This document shows, in pieces, positions 11,395 through 27,000 of a DNA stretch of 64,000 bases; position 1 is the stretch's first letter; every line of letters begins with the position of its first letter. The translations under genes and the position numbers were made by a program. The notes under the pieces were generated by a model. The model was not told where the DNA came from. It made no database searches and was given only the letters and a program-made list of their open reading frames with translations. The DNA is from Geosiphon pyriformis uo1 (lineage: Eukaryota; Fungi; Glomeromycota). The stretch spans positions 124,001 to 188,000 of the forward strand of contig JAAOMT010000661.1 of assembly GCA_016748015.1 (NCBI GenBank), given 5' to 3'.

Positions 11395-12546
11395 ATGAAA
11401 TCTAGATCATTGGAAATTTTGAAAAATCATAGCTGTGTTTTAGTAAAGCAAACATGTAATGGTTTATTTTCAATCACAATTAACATCAAGATCGGATCAA
11501 AACCTATACTACTTGAAGCAGAAATCTTCAACATCTCAAAATTTGTGTCGCGATGTCAAACAAAAATTAGTCCCAATTCTTTCCTTCTTTATCGTATGGT
11601 CGTCCAAGAGGCTGTTAATCTGTCAGGGTATTGCATTGAAAGGAAAGAGGTTTCCCAAATCGCGAAAGAAACCTGGAAAAATTCTGATTGGCTCAAATCA
11701 CATTTTAAGTCGGTGTTCATGAAGGTTAAGGAGGCTTTGAAGACAGATCCGAGTCGTTTTATCGCCGAAAATCCTATTGATGGAAGTAGAACAGTAATTG
11801 AAAAAAGTACCCTTTCTCATGATGCTTCATCAATTGAAAGTATAAATAGTCAATATCTTGTGCCCGACTTCATAATTTCTCAAAGCGAAAATTCTTTGAA
11901 TTGTCCATCAAACCAGTTTTTCAGCCCACCCTACACCCCAAATTCTTTTGACTCGAAAACTTCTTTGATTGTACCCACGGAAGAATTTTTGAATATGCCC
12001 ATGTATTGCATTGAAAGGAAAGAGGTTTCCCAAATCGCGAAAGAAACCTGGAAAAATTCTTATCGGCTCAAACCACATTTTAAGTCGGTGTTCATGAAGG
12101 TTAAGGAGGCTTTGAAGACAGATCCGAGTCGTTTTATCGCCGAAAATCCTATTGATGGAAGTAGAACAGTAATTGAAAAAAGTACCCTTTCTCATGATGC
12201 TTCATCAATTGAAAGTATAAATAGTCAATATTTTGTGCCCGACTTCATAATTTCTCAAAGCGAAAATTCTTTGAATTGTCCATCAAACCAGTTTTTCAGC
12301 CCACCCTACACCCCAAATTCTTTTGACTCGAAAACTTCTTTGATTGTACCCACGGAAGAATTTTCGAATATGCCCATGGAAGAATTTGTTCAAATTCCCA
12401 ATCAAGCTTTGCAGTTATATCCAAAATTTTTTACTCTAAAAAATCCTATCTATGGGAATAAACTAGTAATTGACACTGAAATTATTTGTTCTCCGCCCGT
12501 TATACCATCACAAAAGGAATCTCAGCACTTTCATCCTATTTATTAA
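11395..12546 (+). CDS. Divergent HMG-box protein with a 125-aa internal tandem duplication
   Basis: SPNSFLLYRMVVQ...EVSQIAKETWKNS..LKSHF is an HMG box. Segment 11629-12003 is repeated at 12004-12378 in frame. Confidence 0.78.
   Translation: MKSRSLEILKNHSCVLVKQTCNGLFSITINIKIGSKPILLEAEIFNISKFVSRCQTKISPNSFLLYRMVVQEAVNLSGYCIERKEVSQIAKETWKNSDWLKSHFKSVFMKVKEALKTDPSRFIAENPIDGSRTVIEKSTLSHDASSIESINSQYLVPDFIISQSENSLNCPSNQFFSPPYTPNSFDSKTSLIVPTEEFLNMPMYCIERKEVSQIAKETWKNSYRLKPHFKSVFMKVKEALKTDPSRFIAENPIDGSRTVIEKSTLSHDASSIESINSQYFVPDFIISQSENSLNCPSNQFFSPPYTPNSFDSKTSLIVPTEEFSNMPMEEFVQIPNQALQLYPKFFTLKNPIYGNKLVIDTEIICSPPVIPSQKESQHFHPIY
11629..12378 (+). repeat. 375-bp direct tandem duplication (2 copies)
   Basis: Both copies start TATTGCATTGAAAGG and end AATATGCCCATG; I count 5 mismatches. 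Confidence 0.95.
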
Positions 12547-13300
12547 ATTAATTAATTAATTAATTAATTAATTAAAACTAGATTACTTCATTTTAATCCC
12601 ATAAATCACTAAGAACCTCTCAATTATAGAAATAAACTTTAGAATTATTAATTATGTAAATTTAAAGATAATTTTTAGAATTCATGAGAAAATTATAGGG
12701 CTATAGAGTATATATATTTTTTACTTATTATATTCGGTGTGAAAATTTCAATCAAAATTGAACTCTAATGGTTCAAATTAACATAAAGTATATATTTTAA
12801 TTTCTATTTGAATTATTAAAAATTCTCACGTAAGACCATAGAAAAAAATATTTATTAAACTAATGCTATAATAAAAATTTAAACAAATAAACTATTTAAG
12901 TAAATGCTTGCATTTTTGTTATAAAGTATTTTCGTGGAGGATAAGGTTTTAATGCACGATATAAGCAAGCCGCATTTTATGATTTACTACTTTCGGCAAT
13001 TATAGTTTGAGCTCTTAGTTATTCCCAAAAATGTATGCATTTAATTAGAGTGATTTAATTGAGACCAATTACGGACATGGGGAATTTCTCAAGCTATTAT
13101 GCATTTTATCATAATCAAATGATTATTTGGGGCTATGATACAGTTCTCAGTCTGTCATCTCTTTAGATTGGAAATGCCTCATATATTTTATCGGTTGACC
13201 ACTATATTTAAGCACGCATTTCAGTTATTAGCATCCTCTATAATCAAAAGCTCACTTCAAAAAATAAGCCTTTAGATTTCTTATTCTCGGCTTTTGCTCT

Positions 13301-15131
13301 ATGTCAACCCAAACCATTAATGGCACTTTTCAGTTTTCGTATCCACCTATTCTCATAGTTGGCCAAACGGGCAAGTAGGAAGTGATACATTGCATATGAA
13401 GAAATTTTAGGAAATTAACACCTTTTAATTAAGGCGTTGGAAAAAGTACTTTGGGAAACTTACTTCTTGGCCTTGACCCAAGTAATGGATATTTTTTAAC
13501 GGGTGATTCTGGGGTATGGAAAATGTATGTGCATTTCGATAATCTTCGCGGCTTAATCAGCTTTCAAGCTTCCATTTTAACAGGATTCAGTAACCACAGC
13601 TTGTCAAACTGCCTGCCTGAAAATTGATGAACAAAATTTTACGCTAATCGATACCCCAGGTCTCTTTGAAATCGGAATGAGCAACGCCGAAAATTGGCGG
13701 AAAATTACGAATAGCCTCAATCATTGTGCCTATGGAGTAAAGGCAATTCTTTTTGTCATGCGTATGTCTCCTAATAGCAAGTTTTTCCTTTTATATGAAA
13801 TAGAGAAAAAAAATTCGATTTTTTAAATATCCTTGAAAACAGGTGCAGGAAGATATTCCATTATCCAAGATTTCATTATTGAGGGAATTATTAATAATTT
13901 TGGGCTTTATTGTTTGGATCATGTAATCATTGTCTTCTCCAATTGCACTCGACTTCAAACCGAGGACCGGCAGAAATTTTTCGCGGGACTCAATGAACGT
14001 CAAAAACGTTTAATCAAAAAAGTTGATAACCGATATTCAATTTTCCCAAATCCTGATATTTACTGGCCAGACAAATACGAGATCATTGAAGAAAATATCA
14101 GGATCCTTAAAAATTTTATTTTAGCCATTCGAGGTCATTATAATCATAGAATTTCCCGGATAATTCGACAAGCGTGTACTACCCAAAATGAAACGCAAAC
14201 TATCGAGGTTCAACAGGCAATTTATACATATGAAGACAACTTAAAAATTATGACACCTGATGAAGCATGGTCTCATTTACAGAATGATATGAAGCGAATC
14301 TTTCAAAATTCTACAAAAGAGAATTTTCCGGAAAGTCCAGATGGCAACGATAATTCAAAAGCTATTCCCGAGGTCTTTCTCCCGGACAGCGACAAATCTG
14401 GCTGTTTTTCCCTTTCGACACAAGTCATTCTTGAGAATGGGAAAGCCATAAATATGGAAAAGCTTAGAGTTGGAGATAAAATTTTATCTCAAAGTATGGA
14501 TGGAAAATTGGAGTTTTCTGAGGTCTATGTCATCCCTCACGCCGATTATGATACTCCAACTGAATTTTTGGAAATTAAATTTCTTCTGCCGCAATTGAAG
14601 GGCAAGTTTCACGAAACTATATAATGATTTAAAAAAGGAACTTTTCAGATACTAAATTTTGATTTTTCCACAGGTATACGGCGACTTCTGGTAACTTCTG
14701 ACCATCATATTTTGGTTGATGGTGATAAGTTTCGATATGCGAACGAAATCAATCCAATGAAAACAACTCTTTTGGCTTTAATGGATGATGAATTGGACCG
14801 AGTTCGAGTGCTCAGCCTTAAAAAGGTTAAAAAGCCTTTTTTAGTCATGTTTTATTTTCAAATTAACTTATTTGAATATATTTAGGTTATCCGTAATGGC
14901 TATATTTCCGTTTTTACTCGTTGTGGTACTATAATTGCTGATGGAATCGTGTGCTCTTGCTACAGTTACTGCTATCCGTATCAAAACATGATTCATCTTT
15001 TAATCGAACCTCTTCGATTATATTCAAAGCTCTTTAATTTGAGTGCTTCAAAGGGCTCTCCCCATATCTATCTCAAGGGGCTAAAACTAATTTATGACGG
15101 ATCAGTAAAATTCTTGAAAACAATTAGTTGA
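13301..15131 (+). CDS. GIN1: AIG1/GIMAP-type NTPase fused to a Hedgehog-type Hog (Hint + sterol-recognition) autoprocessing domain; GmGIN1-like, 494 aa, 6 exons
   Basis: Exons 13301-13370, 13434-13513, 13584-13761, 13843-14601, 14674-14825 and 14886-15131 total 1485 nt with no internal stop. G1 is GQTGVGKST, G2 SVT, G3 IDTPGL. The cleavage junction is KSG|CF (Cys codon at 14403), block B is TSDH, the Hint end is GTIIADGIVCSCY, and the tail has HLLIEPLRL...HIY. The symbol is assigned by architecture; orthology was not tested. Confidence 0.9.
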
Positions 15132-15503
15132 GCTAGTATATCAACTTCCAAAAGTTGAAATTGAAGGCGTAACGCTTTTAGCCTTGAGATTTTTATTACC
15201 GAATACGGGTTTAAGCTAAATTTTCGCATTTTTCAATGCTCCGATGAAGGAGAGTTTCTATTAACCTAATATGCACTTTTCACCGAGTTGACCCTCTATA
15301 TTAGCTTGTTATTTCAATTTGTAATAATATACAGTCAAACCTGAGATAACCCATACGCTTGGTGGATACAAATTGCTATGGGTTATTAAAGGTTATGGGT
15401 TTTCTCAGGTTTAAGTATATATAGTATACATATAATAAAAATAAATATAATATTATTAAAAAATAAATTTATTTGCATATTCTTATAAGAATCTTTAATT
15501 AGA

Positions 15504-17147
15504 TTATGCAATATTAAAGAAACTTGTAAGATTTGTTTGTTTTTGTACATCTTGCATTCTCTTATGAAGTATACGTTTAACATGAGCAAGCTTACTAACT
15601 GCATCATAAAATTCCATGCTATTTTCAAGCTCCATAAACTGTTCAAGATTTGTAATAGCAGTTAGTGCATCCTTAATACTCATTACTTTCTGTACTTCTT
15701 GTTCTTCATCAGAGCTATCATGCTTTGTTTCACGATTTGTTATAATATAATTTGCAATCTCATCATCATCCAGATGTTCCAAAGTAATTGTATCATTTTC
15801 TTCAGATAGATTTACCAACCCTTCAATTGATAAGTATGTACGATTTGGCTGTATGCAATTGAACTCTTTGTAGCAATCCTTAATTTTTTCTAATACTATC
15901 TCTTGATTATAATTAGCTATTATTTCCAAGTTTGTAGCTTCATTCTGAAAGTTGTCATTTGTATTGATTGGAAGAATGCCAACTTTGTGCCAGCAATAAG
16001 CGATTGTTTGATTTGAAACATTCTCCCATGCCCTATAAATTAGACGCATTGCTTGAAGTTGGTTAATTGCATAAATATCATCTGCACCATCATCAAAAAG
16101 ATCTAATACATGGCGAAGAAAATAGCGACAGTAATGTGCCTTAAAACAATGAATAATTCCAGCATCCATAGGCTGAATATGTGCTGTTAAGTTAGGTGCA
16201 AACCGTTCTACATGAATATTTGTAATAGATCTCATATCATAGTTGTGACCAGCAAAATTGTCTACTAACAACAATATTTTTCGGTTTTTTTTATGCAGCT
16301 GATAGTCCCAATCAACAAGCCATTGTCAAAAAATATCACCAGTCATCCAAGCACGAGTGTTTGAATAATATTGGAAACCAAGTTGCTCTCCTGTTTTTTT
16401 TTGAAAACAGTGTGGACGTTTAGCATGACCAATAATAAGTGGTGGCAAATGCTCGGTTCCATTAGCATTGGTTGTAAAGGCAAGTGTCAGTCGCACTTTT
16501 GATTGTTTGGTGCTATGACGTGGTATTGTAGCAAGACCTTGATTTGGTGATATGGCATAAAATAGTGCAGTTTCATCCATGTTGAAAATATCGTATAACT
16601 TCCAATCAGCAAGAAGTGTTATTACACGCACTCACTCATCTTCAATATGCTCAACATTGGCTGATGATCCATCACCATGAAAGCGAAGTGAACGCAATCC
16701 AACATGGTCTTTAAAGCTCTCAAGCCAGCCATTGGATAGTTTTTGGCACTCATTTTCTGGAATATCCAATTGATCATAGAACTTTATGCCAGCAGCTCGA
16801 ATTACATCTCCAGTAAGTGTCATTCCACGCGATTCTGCCTCTTGAACAAAAATAACAAGTGCTTTATCAAAGTCAGGATTACATACTGTGCGTATACACT
16901 TGCTAGTCAAGTCATGCATTGTATTTGCTCGTGCATGAAGATTTGGTTCATCTTTGACCCAAGCCGAAACTAGAGGCTGTTTCATGTATAGAAAACCGTT
17001 TTCCTTAAAGTGCCTTGCAGTTTTTGATTGGTTTTTATCATTTGCATAATACCAATCAAGCACCATAAGCTTATCATGAAGTGTAGCATTCTCACGACTT
17101 TGCAGAACGCAAGCTGAAGAGATAGCATGCTTTTTGCTATTAGGCAT
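15504..17147 (-). pseudogene. pogo/Tigger transposase, one reading frame of 547 codons broken by two TGA stops
   Basis: The three track ORFs are in one frame, with stops at 16632-34 and 16326-28. Motifs: CENP-B HTH LSNGWLESFK and the triad FNMDET / LLVDNFAGH / QPMDAGII (DD31D). Confidence 0.92.
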
Positions 17148-17202
17148 GGTGGAATCAAAAGGCAAAGGAAAAGTACGATTAGGATGAGGCTGATCCAAAA
17201 AT

Positions 17203-17455
17203 CCGACTTGATTACTCACACAATTGATAATAATTTAAAACTTGGAACAATTCGAAACTCTGATTTGATTACTCACACAATCAATAATAATTTAGAACTT
17301 GGGACAATTCGGAACTCCGACTTGATTACTCACAAGGTTTGTAATAATTTAAAACTTGGGACAATTCGAAACTCCAACTTGATTACTCATACAATCGATA
17401 ATAATTTAGAACTTGGGACAATTCGAAACTCCGACTTGATTACTTACACGATTAA
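17203..17455. repeat. 57-bp tandem repeat, ~4.4 copies, inside the pogo element upstream of the transposase
   Basis: Unit CCGACTTGATTACTCACACAAT...CTTGGGACAATTCGAAACT recurs at 17203, 17260, 17317, 17374 and 17431. Confidence 0.93.
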
Positions 17456-21035: not shown

Positions 21036-24000
21036 TCAAGTGGTTTGATTATCTCCAAGCCATTGCAACAGCTTTTCTTTGAGCTGTAAAAGTTTAAGCG
21101 GTTTCGTTAAATAATCATTCATTCCACTCTCCAGGCATTTATCCCGAGTGCCTTGAACTGCGGAAGCAGTCAATGCGATGATGGGTATTTCAGATTTAGG
21201 TGGCCCCAAAGCACGAATTGCCTTCGACGCATCGAAACCGGACATAACTGGCTATAATATACATTTAAAATGCTCATTAGAAAATTGCAAAGTTGGGAGG
21301 GTTGGAATAAAAAAAGTAGCAATTACCATTGCACAATCCATTAGAATCAACGAAACTCTATCGGATCCAATGGAAGAGTCAAGATCGCCTTGCATAAGGT
21401 TTACGGCCTCTTGGCCGTTAGTAGCCGATAAACATTGGTACCCAAGTTTAGAAAGCTGATGTTGAATAACCTAGATAAATAAAAAAACAAAATATGAACA
21501 TTATCAAACATATGATGGATGAAAGTTCTTGTGACATAAATATTTTTTATAAAATAGGAACTTGGAGCACTGACCTTCAAATTAATAGGGTTATCTTCCT
21601 GCATGTCAAATTTGAGTTAAATAGTGAATTTTAAGATTCTTGGTCAAAAATAATTAAAGGACAAAATACGTACAACACATAATATACATCTTGATTGTGA
21701 GACAGCACGAGTTCGAGATTTATGATGTGTTTCAGGCTGGTCCGAGTCTTGAGCCTCACAAGAAGCCGACCTCTTACTTGGTGGCCTCTGGGATACATCC
21801 TTCAATGCTTTTGTTGGAGATTGTTGATCAGATGAGGCATTAGTTGATGAGGTGAGAAGTGTCTCACGAATCATATCCACGTCAATTTCAGAATTATTTT
21901 TCGCCTCCTTTAGCTCGGTAGTCGTATTTTTGGTCATCGTAGATTCTTGACTACTGCTTGAAGGAGTTGGTCGGTTGTGTTGTTCATAATCGTCAATTCG
22001 GAATCGATTAATAGAAAATCCGACGTTTGACTTGAGTTCAGCCACCTCAGTGGAATTGAATATTTCATTATTATGCAAACACTCCAACAATCTTCTCTGC
22101 ATGATAGGTTTGCAAATTGCAGCCGCATTTCCTCCAATCTTTCGGATTAGTTCTTTACCAAGAGCACGACCACACACGGACCAAAATACTAATAATCCAA
22201 TTGTCAGATTATTCTTTCCACAAATAGAAATGAATTCTTTGGCAGATTCCAAAACTTGCTCGGCATTCTTTTCAGTCACATTAAAAAAAACCATATCACA
22301 TGGCGATTTATGGTATTGCTGATGCCAAGCTTTTGCTGCCATAATTGCTTTGGAACAATCACTAAATGCCTCTACTTTTTGAACGCTAGGGCTTAACATT
22401 GCCGACATAGCAGATCGAGCAGTTTCAACTGGGTCTATTATGATTACACGTTTCGATTTAACTATGGCAGGTACAGCAAATAATGCTTCACCAGTTGCTA
22501 ATTGAGAAGGTGATGTCAATGGAGTGGCCGAAAGGGTGAGGGGTTCTACGTTCCAGGTGAACCAGAATCGACTGCCTTTTCCTAATTCACTCTGTACCCC
22601 TAAATCACCTCCATTAATTGACACTAAATGTTTACAAATTGAGAGACCTAAGCCAGTTCCATCCTGTCGCCTAGTCATTGAAGGGTCACCTTGTGAAAAA
22701 CTTTCCCAGATATCTTTCATGAAAGCTGGATCAATTCTAATAAAGAATTGAAAATAAAATTATGTTTCAAATATTTCATAATTGATAGGTTTGAACTAAA
22801 TCCCAGTGTCCTACCCAATTCCAGTGTCAGTCAATTCGACAAGAAGAGTGCCAGTTTTGACGATATTTGGTTCTGTATCAGCTCCTGTTTCTTTAACTTG
22901 TACATCGGATGAAGCTAAAGAAATTTTAAGCACGATTTCACCAGACTCGGTGAATTTCACACTGTCAAATGAGAAGTTATTTTAACAATTTCGATATGTA
23001 AAATAAAAACTATTGGCTGGGTTTGAGAATACTTACGAATTCGATAATAGATTCATGAGAATTTGTTGTAATCTATAGGTTTGTTTTCGTAATGGTCAGC
23101 ATTTAGGACTCAACTTCTCAAACTTAAATATCAAAAGAAAAAATTTAGATGGCAAGACTTCGTACCTTTCAGGATCAGACTTTACATATTTTGGCAGTTC
23201 AGTTGGTGCAAAAAGCAACACCAGTTCAATTTGCTTGGTGCCAGCCCGTTCGCCGAAAATTTCAATAGTTTTTTCCACGAGATCAAATAAATCAAAGGTT
23301 CGATTCATCAGCGTGATTTTTTGTGCTTCAAGTTTCGCGGCGTCCAAAATATCGTTTACAACGGAAAGAACCACATCAGAAGCACGTGTCATTATTTCAA
23401 CCATATCCCTTTGATCCGAGGAAAGAGGGGTATCTTCAAAAGCTGATAGTACACCAATTATTGCTCCTAAGGGTGTACGTAATTCTGATTTGAAGTTGAG
23501 AATTATGAGTAAATGCTTTCGATGTTAAAGGTTTGCTTGAAAATTGAAACGCAAGACTTCAAAGATACCATGGGAGGTATTGGCCAGAATTTGGCTTTTA
23601 GCCTCATTTGCCGCCTTGGCCGCTTCCATTTGCGCTTCACGTTTTAGTTTTTCTTCGGAAAGTTTGGAATGGGTGATAGCTAAGCTGATTTGATTGGAAA
23701 TCTGTTGCAAAAAAATCTTTTCTGCGTTGGACCAATTCTCATTGGGCTTTCGATGAGCAACAATCCAGCCCCAGAAAGAAGAATTCAGGCGAATAGCAAC
23801 TGACATTGAAGATACATGCTGATTAAGAATTTGGGAAAAATAATTTTTGTGACTTTCGATTTCCAAATCAAGAATATCATTATCGGTGTCTCCTATGTTT
23901 AAAAATGAGGGTAACTCATTGTTTACAGGTGCTGTTTGTTCCTGTAAGGCTCCGGTGAAAGATGCTAAAAATGATGAAAGCGGATAAGCTGGTGAATTGA

Positions 24001-27000
24001 CATCAGATGAGCCATCCAATTGGTCACCCCAAGATTCTTTAGAGTCAATTGCTTTACAAGAGATTTGGGTTCCAACCAAAGCTTGAATTTCGGGGTCAAA
24101 AGCTGAAGCTGCCATTATCTGTGCCGACCCTTTATTCATTGGATCACTAAAAAGGACAAGTAATGATTCACAGACTAAAATTCGATGAATTTCTTCAACC
24201 GCCGTCGATAAGATTTCTTTAATATTAAATCCGGAACGAATTTTGCTGCTAATAGAGAATAGCAATTGTTTGGTTTCAGCTTGAGAACGTTGTTGAACCA
24301 CCAATTCATGGCGAAGATTAGATAATTTAATATTGCTTCGTACACGAGCAATCAGCTCACGAGCATTAAAAGGTTTGATCAAATAATCATCAGCCCCTCG
24401 CTCCAATCCTTAAAATAAAAGTAAAGCATTTTTACAAGCTTAGATACTAGTGCTTTGAAATAAAATTTTTATGAACAAACCTTCGACGCTAGCCTCTTCA
24501 CCAGCTCGAGCCGATAAGAGAATCACGGGAATCATTTTAGTTGATGGATCCGAACGTAGAATTTTTAATAACTCAAAGCCATTCATGTTAGGCATCATAA
24601 TATCTATTTTTAAGTGTGTAAATAAAATTATCAATTTACATAATCAAGCAAAAATTCAAATTTTAACTATGATATTAACCGCTTAACACAAGATCGGGTT
24701 TTATCTCATGCTTAGTGATAATGTTAAGTGCGTCACGGCCGTCAGTGGCACTTCGCACCTCAAATTCTGTTTTTAAGATGTTACAAAGATAGTTTCTAAT
24801 CGGAGAGAGAAATAATTAGTCAATAAAAGCTTTGGCGTTACTGATACATCGAATCATAAAGGATATTCGATATCTTAGGATTCAAATACCTCATATCAGC
24901 ATTATCATCCACAACAAGAACACGTTTAATTCTGTTCGGATCACTTCCGAATTCTTCTAGTAAAAATGGAGATCGAACATCCTTAGCGGCGCCTAACGTT
25001 GGTGAAGCGATCGATAGAGTCTTCAAATGTTCAATTGTGTTCTTAGCTTCGTGATCGTCTTCCTCAAATTTAGTTTGGAAACCTTGGGAATCATGTTTTT
25101 CCGTATTCCATTGTTTACATTCCTCCAAATACAAATCGACATTTCTAGAAAACTGATTTTCCCGAAGTGATGGTATCGGATATTTCGCGTTTCCTTCTCT
25201 AATACCATTAATGTAAACATTTTTCCTAGGCAATTGATCATATCCGGTTGGTATCCATACTCGGAATGTAGTGCCAACATCAACTTCTGAAGTGACACTT
25301 ATATCTCCTCCGTGACGAATTGCTAATTCTTTAACTAGAGCAAGACCTATACCTGTGCCTTCATGACTACGGGATTGATGCGACTCAATTCGATAAAACC
25401 GTTGAAAAATATTAGGTAGATGCTCTGGGGAAATCCCGACACCTTGAAATTTGAATTAGATGAAGTATTTGTATGAATGGTTAAACTTTATCAAAAATTT
25501 ATATATATAAGAATATAGACTTATAAATTGGATAATTTTACCTGTGTCAGTAACTTCTAATATAACAACTTCTCCACATTCCATTTTGTCAGCATAAAGC
25601 CGAATGGTAACCCCTCCATCCCAGGTATATTTGAAGGCATTTGAACCTAGGTTGACATAGTAGTTTTGTGTGAATATGTATTTTCTATTATCCCAGAAAC
25701 TTTTTTATCAAGAGTAAAAAACTTACATAGGTTAAATACAATTTTTTCATACAAATCCAAATCCAAATAGACTTTGTGTTCCAACTGAAGTTGCAGCGTT
25801 TCATTGCTGGGAATGTCTAAAGTAAATGTTAGGCCAAAAGATTTGGCCATGCTCTCAAAGTTGGAGGCCAATTCGGTGGTGACCTTCGCAATATCTGTTT
25901 CACAGTAATGAGCTTCAAGACGACCTGCTTCAATTCGTGAAAACTTTATAGATCGGGAAAGACGTTACATCATGGCCGAATATAATCAAGAGTGATAATT
26001 TATTATGTCAATAACTAACCTGTAAGAGAGTATTCACTAATTTTAGTAGTCTTCTCGCATTACGTTGAATCATTTTCAAATTGTAAAGAATCGGTGAATC
26101 GGGTGCACATGAAGAGATTGCATCCTCCAGGGGAGCCAGCATGAGTGTAAGTGGAGCTTTGAAAACCACACATTTTTGGTGTAAGCAATTTTTCAATTGG
26201 TGAAAAATCAATAAGACACACTCTAATTTTTGAAATTAAAATATTACTTCGCAATTCGTGGCTAATATTTTGGAAAAACATTATCTTTTGACGATTAAGA
26301 TCGGCTAAAGTTTCTGCCTGCTTTCTTTCTTCTTCACGTGATCTTCCATTAGTTAGGCTAGAACTGACGTGGCCAACAACGAGCTGGGAAACAAACAAAA
26401 AGGATTAATTTTCAAATTTTATTTTCCCGAAATTCAAGCTTACTGACCTGGCAGAATTCCAAGTATTCTGTGTCTAACGCTCGGCGTACATTAACTCCAC
26501 ATATTAGGATTGCGGTTAAAACGGTTTTCCCAGCAAACGATGTTAAAACGGGAAGAAGTATTGCTTGCGATTTGTCAGCAAGTGTGACAAGTACATGTTG
26601 GTTTGTTCGAATCACTTGCTCAATAGGCCACGATTCAGGAGTGAACGAGGAAAATGATGATTTTGTTAAACTTTCTGTCTGTGTCAACGAGTCTGAAGAT
26701 TGTAACTGCGATTTTTGATCCATCTCATTATTTTTTGATTTTTGAATATCTTTTAAGAAAGCTTCCATCGCATTAGTAACATTTAAAACATGATGTGACT
26801 TTGGTAGCTGATCAGGTAAATTTCTTGAAGATTTTCCCGTAACAAATATTAATTCTTCGACTCCATCATCACCGGATTGGGTATGTAGATTATCATCAAA
26901 AGTGGTAGCAGTCAAACGAGCCACATAGGTTTGGTTATCTTCGCCTGCTTCATTCTTCCCGATGAGATATATGAGGGCATAGGTGATGTCGGCATTATTA

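Follow-up and report, generated by a model that had tools for sequence, protein, structure and literature searches.

The central question raised by this locus is whether a fungus can release a cytosolic GTPase from a Hedgehog-type domain and, in the same reaction, furnish it with a sterol. At positions 13301-15131 on the forward strand of the window (the whole stretch of 64,000 nucleotides of Geosiphon pyriformis DNA that was analysed), an AIG1-Hog fusion gene was read in six exons, amounting to 1485 nt (494 codons and a stop codon). Judged by its predicted sequence, the precursor joins a cytosolic P-loop GTPase of GIMAP-like type to a Hedgehog-type autoprocessing domain at its C-terminus, with 296 residues up to a glycine (GGC 14400-14402) and 198 more from the cysteine that follows (TGT 14403-14405). 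The features on which the argument depends are listed below.

13301..13370, + strand: exon 1, with the start codon, the first beta-strand and the first half of Walker A (ending IVGQT plus the first base of a Gly codon)
13371..13433, + strand: intron 1, 63 nt, GC-AG with donor GCAAGT, phase 1 within the Gly codon of GxxG/VGKST
13434..13513, + strand: exon 2, with the second half of Walker A (VGKSTLGN...)
13584..13761, + strand: exon 3, with the switch regions including G3 DTPG (13650-13661); Pfam AIG1 1.9e-9
13843..14601, + strand: exon 4, with the remaining GTPase domain, a helical linker of ~110 residues, Gly296/Cys297 (14400-14405), the first 66 Hog residues and His46 in Hint numbering (CAC 14538-14540)
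14602..14673, + strand: intron 4, 72 nt, GC-AG with donor GCAAGT, phase 1
14674..14825, + strand: exon 5, with Hint motif B T-S-D-H (14694-14705) and the central strands
14886..15131, + strand: exon 6, with the last Hint strands, motif J S-C-Y (14955-14963; Cys 14958-14960), two SRR-like helices and the TGA stop (15129-15131)
14994-15017 and 15063-15071, + strand: SRR-like tail of exon 6, helix 1 with H..P.RL and helix 2 with H-I-Y, respectively

That this is a fusion gene with the predicted six-exon structure can hardly be doubted. An in-frame stop lies upstream of the start codon of exon 1, and the model, its two GC-AG introns included, is supported because intron positions are conserved in relatives. 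All five introns interrupt the identical codon in the identical phase in the Ambispora leptoticha homologue, three of the five positions are common to the Rhizophagus irregularis gene, and the GC-AG introns 1 and 4 are each matched in position and phase in both fungi. In fact, the homologues are consistent with the six-exon model at all junctions, exon 2 is 66% identical to residues 50-78 of the Ambispora protein, and a Hog-family profile runs collinearly along the three Hog exons (profile positions 1-72, 63-122 and 118-197 of 200). The division into a 296-aa NTPase and a 198-aa domain, proposed in a preliminary description of this DNA, corresponds exactly to these exon coordinates and gains support from the conserved introns. 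A search for RNA sequencing runs covering 13201-15300 returned none. A pseudogene was ruled out: each exon keeps an open reading frame, and at about 35% identity to relatives the residues of catalysis and of the tail are still in place.

A different product is given by the sole public model of the gene, a 442-aa protein (P0001) in which the P-loop and the sterol tail are both lost. P0001 shares the GC-AG intron 4 with the six-exon model; at intron 1 it uses a GT donor located 4 nt downstream, deleting GVGKS, and its tail is frameshifted. Were this the true product, the locus would encode a GTPase-like protein without P-loop and without tail, ending in a bare Hint domain, and the six-exon model would be over-optimistic. 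The presence of P0001 in public collections with those junctions and the canonical GT donor of its intron 1 speak for this reading. However, three of its junctions deviate and each of them removes residues conserved in homologues, they conflict with the intron positions conserved in Ambispora and Rhizophagus, and its 3' intron is in-frame coding sequence for SRR motif K, all of which makes it extremely improbable that P0001 is the real protein. With the six-exon model, the public annotation is corrected, and the P-loop and sterol tail that it conceals become visible.

At the domain level, the searches were carried out exon by exon and not on a joined protein. Pfam AIG1 (PF04548) recognises exon 3 at 1.9e-9 (37.6 bits, with a cut-off of 27) and exon 4 at 5.6e-5, reaching 67.7 bits when combined, while exons 1 and 2, too short when searched singly, gave no Pfam match. 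A family N-terminal profile retrieves GIMAP7, 4, 5, 2 and 1 with E values from 1e-35 to 2e-19, GIMAP7 being the best (1.5e-35). The AIG1-type NTPase named in the preliminary description is thereby upheld, with GIMAPs as its nearest solved relatives. Walker A reads GQTG-VGKST, legible only when the GC-AG intron 1 is removed, and is followed by the G3 motif DTPG at 13650-13661. The G4 region, in which FSNCTRLQTED aligns with FTRKEELEG of GIMAP7, displays no clear specificity residue, so that NTPase is the safer term. The P-loop strand begins already at residue 16, which leaves no room for a signal peptide. The earlier statement that the NTPase lacks both a signal peptide and a transmembrane anchor is upheld. 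Vertebrate GIMAPs have G1 and G3 in common with the fungal protein, as well as a helical C-terminal extension. Several GIMAPs carry a hydrophobic anchor at their C-terminus, whereas the fungal protein has the Hog domain in its place.

The second half of the precursor matches Pfam Hint (PF01079) in exon 4, residues 183-245 (1.8e-8, 34.7 bits, above the cut-off of 29.7), and in exon 6 (1.6e-5), with 59.9 bits over the neighbouring exons; exon 5 is too short to produce a Pfam or PDB match on its own. Both the AIG1 and the Hint models, which had been put forward as a check, therefore score above their cut-offs. When the family Hog profile is compared with Drosophila Hedgehog 256-443 (E 3e-32), C258, T326, H329 and C400 align with Cys1, TxxH and SCY. 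Accordingly, the putative cleavage site GGC-TGT-TTT (14400-14408), encoding Gly/Cys-Phe, falls on Drosophila G257/C258-F, and the S-C-Y at 14955-14963 on the Drosophila SCY containing C400; the role of C143 in Hedgehog motif J is documented elsewhere (PMC12054796). The AlphaFold model of the Ambispora homologue Hog domain (pLDDT 85) exhibits a Hint fold and, after it, two helices (151-168 and 180-197), and its best Foldseek matches are 6TYY and 1AT0 (TM 0.87), with intein and bacterial intein-like domains at rank 3 and below.

The tail retains equivalents of human SHH H374, P379, R381, H433 and Y435. It has been demonstrated in vitro that H433 and Y435 are the two residues required in SHH (PMC7242414), and it is precisely the H and Y of helix 2 that are invariant across the fungal family. 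Exon 6 aligns with Drosophila Hh 379-425, including the tail against Hh helix 1, and a profile built from the tail only ranks Drosophila Hh first among 177,635 PDB sequences, in two collinear pieces (404-434 and 437-461), with an E value of 0.02 that is marginal alone. In the Ambispora model, which represents a homologue and not the Geosiphon protein, the tail helices reach a pLDDT of only 60-73. The complete Hog module with an SRR-like tail described earlier is thus recovered, and each of its motifs (DSDKSG/CF, TSDH, SCY, H..P.RL and H.Y) is found in the sequence. Taken together, Drosophila HhC (1AT0/6TD6) and human SHH-C resemble the fungal domain in the Hint fold, the Gly/Cys-Phe site, TxxH, the SCY (C143) and a helix-loop-helix tail bearing H..P.RL and H.Y. 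The middle residue of the Hedgehog HWY, in contrast, is Ile in the Geosiphon protein and Pro in its relatives. The locus does not encode a Hedgehog proper, since the signal peptide and the N-terminal HH_signal domain are absent and the N-terminal part is an AIG1 GTPase from residue 16; the fungal cargo is a cytosolic GTPase without signal peptide instead of a secreted signalling domain.

A further departure from Hedgehog concerns the general base, which is Asp in Hedgehog and appears to be His in the fungal domain. At Hint position 46, His (CAC 14538-14540) stands where Drosophila has D303, and this is the rule in the family: among 119 aligned Hint segments that cover the position, 100 carry His and 7 carry Asp. 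The best PDB match of exon 4 is 6TYY, the D46H (D303H) mutant of Drosophila HhC, which is also the top fold match of the Ambispora homologue model. In this "base swap" mutant the structure and the cholesterolysis activity are both retained, and sterol tolerance is broadened (PMC9163320). By analogy, the natural His at position 46 would act as the general base. While 6TYY is an engineered mutant, the His base would be the natural state in the AIG1-Hog family.

Regarding the outcome of the reaction, the protein ends 55 residues past SCY without an Asn-Cys/Ser/Thr junction. An intein was ruled out as there is neither a C-extein nor a terminal Asn, and the earlier expectation that the domain should cleave rather than splice holds for the same features. 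Inteins and bacterial intein-like domains have in common with the fungal protein the Hint fold and the chemistry of the initial acyl shift; they differ in possessing the C-extein, the terminal Asn and the downstream nucleophile that it lacks, and in the Ambispora homologue model both fold and sequence lie nearer to Hedgehog (TM 0.87 versus 0.7-0.86; identity 30% versus 13-20%). Self-cleavage between Gly and Cys is quite probable.

How a sterol might enter the reaction can be proposed by homology. Cys297 would attack the Gly296 carbonyl and produce an N-to-S acyl shift aided by T-x-x-H, after which the thioester may, as happens in Hedgehog, move on to the S-C-Y cysteine. The two C-terminal helices would then dock on the membrane and present the sterol 3-OH, and His342 (Hint position 46), in place of the Hedgehog Asp, would activate this hydroxyl so that the sterol resolves the thioester. 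The reaction would yield a free Hog fragment of 198 residues and the 296-residue GTPase, now esterified with a sterol at its C-terminal Gly and thereby equipped, after translation, with a membrane anchor. The sterol would come from the fungus itself. Geosiphon pyriformis has a cyanobacterium as its partner, and the host sterol that had been entertained as an adduct is for this reason unlikely. Sterol attachment is compatible with the sequence, in which all the residue classes that Hedgehog cholesterolysis requires can be found, His taking the place of the Asp general base. The whole chain, from cleavage through sterol transfer to the GTPase, has about an even chance of being right; a sterol as the adduct on the cleaved GTPase falls slightly short of that, and the more specific version, in which a Hog domain with a natural His base esterifies Gly296 to a fungal 24-alkyl sterol, is put forward tentatively. 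Ideas of the GTPase as a "sterol-gated switch" or as the bearer of a "lipid-droplet anchor" are speculation.

Two further readings keep the gene and give its Hog domain another task. The domain may cleave without transferring any sterol, with water, glutathione or another nucleophile resolving the thioester, so that the role of Hog would be limited to deciding when the GTPase is freed from a C-terminal module that locks or localises it. Hedgehog processing takes place in the secretory pathway; the fungal protein is cytosolic and lacks a signal peptide, and there glutathione could resolve the thioester, a point against sterol transfer. The residue preceding Cys1 points the same way, being variable in the family (G, A, Q, E, K, S, W) and a fixed Gly in Hedgehog. 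In addition, sterol transfer has been demonstrated for metazoan Hedgehog members only, and the adducts of nematode and protist Hog domains are not established, hence the neutral "adduct recognition region" of Bürglin (PMC2362128), while Hedgehog mutants without SRR still undergo proteolysis (PMC7242414). Against this reading count the tail, which keeps precisely the SHH cholesterolysis residues (H, P and R in helix 1; H and Y in helix 2), with the helix 2 pair invariant even in deeply diverged family members, and the general base, conserved though unneeded for plain thioester formation. Cleavage alone is consequently considered rather unlikely.

The Hog domain might otherwise have ceased to process and persist as a non-catalytic membrane- or sterol-binding module still attached to the GTPase. 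The replacement of the canonical Asp by His would be in keeping with such a loss, and the literature searched yielded no experiment on any fungal AIG1-Hog member, autoproteolysis with sterol transfer included. Nevertheless, Drosophila HhC stays active after the D-to-H swap (PMC9163320), and Cys1, TxxH, SCY and His46 are all retained at an overall identity to relatives of only 30-57%, which would be difficult to account for unless catalysis were under selection. A non-processing domain is thus very unlikely.

The preferred reading, cleavage coupled to sterol transfer, must be placed in the context of the family. The gene belongs to the glomeromycotan AIG1-Hog (GmGIN1-type, MEROPS C46) family, of which it is an intact and apparently single-copy member. 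As later papers citing it report, GmGIN1 of Glomus (Funneliformis) mosseae, described in 2002, is a fusion of an AIG1/IAN-type GTPase with Hog, and the idea of sterol attachment dates from that description (PMC2362128, PMC6956056). The architecture was already covered by Bürglin in 2008 (PMC2362128), and in GmGIN1-type proteins, which lack a signal peptide, the Hog domain is a genuine one that carries motifs J, K and L (PMC2362128, PMC8778642). The Geosiphon gene is therefore a further member of an architecture already described, as the preliminary description had acknowledged for the fusion and as GmGIN1, Bürglin's survey, MEROPS C46 and Pfam all bear out. Compared with the family, without the GmGIN1 sequence itself, the protein shares the two-domain architecture, the P-loop consensus, His46, the tail motifs and the intron positions, at ~35-37% identity to the Funneliformis, Rhizophagus and Ambispora homologues. 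In a tree in which the public model P0001 was used as a stand-in for the Geosiphon protein, the gene pairs with the Ambispora copy (99/99) and not with the Funneliformis clade, the deeper order of the five family clades being left unsettled.

The question of sterol transfer is not a new one; the hypothesis goes back some twenty years, and any family member could serve to test it. Its importance lies in the fact that animal Hedgehog proteins are still described as the only ones to which a sterol is covalently attached (PMC7242414). Motifs J, K and L, missing from most protist Hog domains (PMC2362128), are kept in the fungal AIG1-Hog family, the clearest non-animal candidate for sterol attachment. 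If true, this would be the first case of a protein sterylated outside animals, and the first of a cytosolic enzyme so modified; sterol transfer would then be older than Hedgehog signalling and able to substitute for the C-terminal membrane anchor of GIMAP-type GTPases. The AIG1+Hint family is reported to be hugely expanded in Glomeromycotina. In contrast, queries with exon 4, Pfam Hint, Pfam AIG1, the Hog profile and the Ambispora G domain found this locus as the only Hint or AIG1 locus in the 128-Mb Geosiphon genome, a copy count that is a lower bound. A single copy makes Geosiphon a simpler test case than the many Rhizophagus paralogues, and the occurrence of the gene in this fungus argues against the sensing of plant signals as the core role of the family.

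When the region 13250-15200 of the AT-rich, clearly eukaryotic window (G+C 29.3%) is read in all three forward frames, six open reading pieces separated by short introns emerge, which compose the AIG1-Hog fusion gene:

13301-13370, + strand: exon E1
13434-13513, + strand: exon E2
13584-13761, + strand: exon E3
13843-14601, + strand: exon E4
14674-14825, + strand: exon E5
14886-15131, + strand: exon E6

The exons sum to 1485 nt and encode 494 residues before a TGA stop. Introns 2, 3 and 5 open with GT donors and introns 1 and 4 with GC donors, the latter lying within the strong consensus GCAAGT. At the cleavage junction, Gly296 (GGC, 14400-14402) ends the N-terminal part and Cys297 (TGT, 14403-14405) starts the C-terminal part, reproducing the 296 and 198 residues of the preliminary description. 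Mapped on its own locus, the homologue of Ambispora leptoticha (P0003) also has six exons, with 5/5 introns at the same codon and phase, the first of them within the same P-loop Gly codon. In Rhizophagus irregularis, introns 1, 4 and 5 lie at identical positions and phases, and the genomic gene structure has no intron in the tail region.

An exhaustive protein search with exon 4 as the query recovered a public prediction of 442 aa (P0001) that is 100% identical across this exon and differs from the six-exon model at three places (13371-13447, 14807-14825 and about 14964-15050). For intron 1 it takes a GT donor that lies 4 nt past the GC one, together with an internal acceptor, and so deprives Walker A of GVGKS; in intron 5, an upstream donor drops eight Hint residues; and an extra 3' "intron" of ~85 nt removes the first helix of the tail and shifts the frame, so that the whole sterol-recognition tail is lost. 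Straight read-through at all three places is found in the homologues from A. leptoticha (P0003), Funneliformis geosporum (P0137), R. irregularis (P0138), R. diaphanus, Dentiscutata, Acaulospora and Endogone, where GxTGxGKSTLGN, the additional strand and the motifs of the tail are all present. Because these homologues and the introns of both Ambispora and Rhizophagus agree with the six-exon model, it is favoured, and P0001 is probably a mis-spliced model.

The domain assignment made beforehand was confirmed by HMMER searches in which each exon was queried singly, both domains scoring above the Pfam cut-off. AIG1 was matched on E3 (1.9e-9; 37.6 bits, with the cut-off at 27) and E4 (5.6e-5), and Hint (PF01079) on E4 residues 183-245 (1.8e-8, 34.7 bits against 29.7) and E6 (1.6e-5); six-frame Pfam scans of the whole assembly gave combined scores at the locus of 59.9 bits for Hint and 67.7 bits for AIG1. 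Of the family profiles built from homologues and the exon pieces of the window, the N-terminal one matches GIMAP7, GIMAP4, GIMAP5, GIMAP2 and GIMAP1 (E 1.5e-35 to 2e-19), above Der/EngA, Toc34 and septins. The Hog profile matches residues 256-443 of full-length Drosophila Hedgehog (E 3e-32); among crystal structures it matches 6TYY and 1AT0, both fragments of HhC, at about 1e-27. All three Hog exons match it in collinear order, over profile positions 1-72, 63-122 and 118-197 of 200.

In the GTPase part, Walker A reads GQTG-VGKST, interrupted by intron 1, and G3 is DTPG (13650-13661). The G4 region is diverged, with FSNCTRLQTED aligned to FTRKEELEG of GIMAP7, and the cautious term "NTPase" adopted earlier is therefore apt. 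With the P-loop strand starting as early as residue 16 and an upstream stop in the same frame, the protein has no signal peptide, in agreement with the preliminary description, and no N-terminal anchor. A hydrophobic segment at the N-terminus is present in some Rhizophagus paralogues (P0004, P0013).

The Hog part holds the following motifs, the first three of them aligned by HMMER to Drosophila Hedgehog (Hh):

14400-14408, + strand: Gly296/Cys297-Phe, aligned to G257/C258-F
14694-14705, + strand: T-S-D-H, aligned to T326...H329
14955-14963, + strand: S-C-Y, aligned to the motif with C400 (C143, Hint numbering)
14994-15020, + strand: H-x4-P-x-R-L, helix 1 region of the tail
15063-15071, + strand: H-I-Y, helix 2 region of the tail

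A recent study showed that C143 bears a branched thioester as an intermediate (PMC12054796). At Hint position 46, whereas Hedgehog has the general base Asp303, the window's gene encodes His (CAC, 14538-14540), which is why exon 4 finds its top PDB match in 6TYY, a mutant engineered as a D46H "general base swap". According to a review, this mutant keeps structure, pKa and cholesterolysis efficiency and accepts more sterols (PMC9163320). Among the Hint-containing matches of the protein search, 100 aligned segments have His at position 46 and 7 have Asp, proportions biased by a retrieval seeded with a His-bearing query; His is present in every named glomeromycotan and Endogone member. The alignments show His, the putative general base, to be the natural state at this position in the AIG1-Hog family. 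In the tabulated Hint-containing matches, the complete set of SCY, H..P.R and H.Y is almost restricted to the AIG1-fusion family, and most other non-animal matches have S-P-F or S-S-F and no tail, a distribution that agrees with Bürglin's account of motifs J, K and L (PMC2362128).

Downstream of SCY the gene encodes 55 further residues. On its own, exon 6 can be aligned with a stretch of Drosophila Hh (379-425) that includes the first helix of the sterol-recognition region, and a tail-only profile (58 positions, from after SCY) ranks Drosophila Hedgehog first of 177,635 PDB sequences (E 0.02) in two collinear pieces, Hh 404-434 and 437-461, the second containing the HWY motif. Marginal if taken alone, this match becomes persuasive in context because it falls on the expected protein, at the expected position and with its pieces in the expected order. 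Cholesterolysis by human SHH requires H374, F377 and R381 of helix 1 and H433 and Y435 of helix 2, W434 not being needed in vitro (PMC7242414). Compared with the SHH tail, the window's retains H, P, R, H and Y and has Ile at both F377 and W434; the helix-2 H and Y are invariant across the family alignment. The AlphaFold model of the Ambispora Hog domain (mean pLDDT 85.4), from a relative 51-57% identical to the outer Hog exons of the window (E4 part and E6) and 32% to E5, shows a confident Hint fold followed by two helices (151-168 and 180-197, pLDDT 60-73). In the PDB this model is matched best by 6TYY and 1AT0 (target-normalised TM 0.87), with inteins ranking below.

The mechanism proposed is based on Hedgehog biochemistry (PMC9163320, PMC12054796, PMC7242414), to which our data add architecture, residues and the fold of a relative. 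By analogy, an N-to-S acyl shift would take place at Gly296/Cys297, possibly with a branched thioester on the SCY cysteine, the tail helices would dock on the membrane, His would activate the sterol hydroxyl, and the sterol-esterified GTPase would be released. Self-cleavage of the window's protein is predicted with good confidence; a sterol adduct on the GTPase is predicted more tentatively, its main rival being cleavage that proceeds without sterol transfer. The sterols of arbuscular mycorrhizal fungi are 24-methyl and 24-ethyl cholesterol, not ergosterol, and under the sterol-transfer reading these two would be the natural substrates of the Hog domain. A host sterol, also suggested as the source of the adduct, is unlikely: the partner of Geosiphon is a cyanobacterium, and therefore neither a host sterol nor a plant signal can be the conserved trigger. 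In vertebrates, several GIMAPs have C-terminal hydrophobic anchors that keep them on membranes or lipid droplets; a C-terminal sterol, if true, would be a functional stand-in for such an anchor.

The fusion is real, but its architecture is already known (PMC2362128, PMC8778642), as the preliminary description had acknowledged in citing GmGIN1. According to later papers (PMC2362128, PMC6956056), it was described as GmGIN1 in 2002; re-examination in 2008 defined GmGIN1 as a bona fide Hog protein without signal peptide (PMC2362128), and the fusion is on record in comparative genomics (PMC8778642) and transcriptomics (PMC6956056, PMC7490403). The literature searched contained no experimental test of processing or adduct for this family. 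The present analysis corrects the gene model, identifies His as the natural occupant of the general-base position, matches the tail at residue level to the positions that SHH requires for cholesterolysis, and adds a single-copy state in the Geosiphon genome (a lower-bound count) and the presence of the family in Endogone.

Five independent queries found no second Hint or AIG1 locus in the Geosiphon assembly (128.3 Mb, 792 contigs), these counts being lower bounds. In a maximum-likelihood tree with P0001 as stand-in, the gene pairs with the protein of Ambispora, the sister genus of Geosiphon (support 99/99); the tree does not settle the branching among the five family clades and hence gives no basis for calling the gene a one-to-one orthologue of GmGIN1. 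In comparative genomics the AIG1+Hint family (MEROPS C46) is reported to be hugely expanded in Glomeromycotina and missing from all other fungi that were analysed (PMC8778642). Contrary to that statement, Endogone sp. FLAS-F59071 encodes an AIG1-Hog fusion (P0019) that has His46 as well as the tail motifs, which shows that the family reaches Mucoromycotina. Odd architectures occur in Diversispora and Rhizophagus paralogues (P0002, P0004, P0013, P0145), namely one Hint start preceded by three AIG1 domains in tandem, duplicates of N-terminal Hint fragments, or a hydrophobic segment at the N-terminus; some of these may be annotation artefacts. In R. irregularis, a stand-alone AIG1 GTPase gene of 272 aa without Hint (L013:3500-4612, - strand) is the convergent neighbour of the AIG1-Hog gene P0138.

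In the window itself, the gene is preceded by a 383-aa ORF (11395-12546, + strand) with no Pfam match and an internal duplication of ~140 residues, in which the stretch beginning CIERKEVSQIAKETWKNS is present twice. Directly downstream (15504-17219, - strand) lies a decayed pogo/Tc5-type transposase in three ORFs, with DDE_1 as two pieces and an HTH_Tnp_Tc5 DNA-binding domain, and further on (21644-24406, - strand) a gene of histidine-kinase type, with GAF and HATPase_c domains, is present in pieces interrupted by introns.
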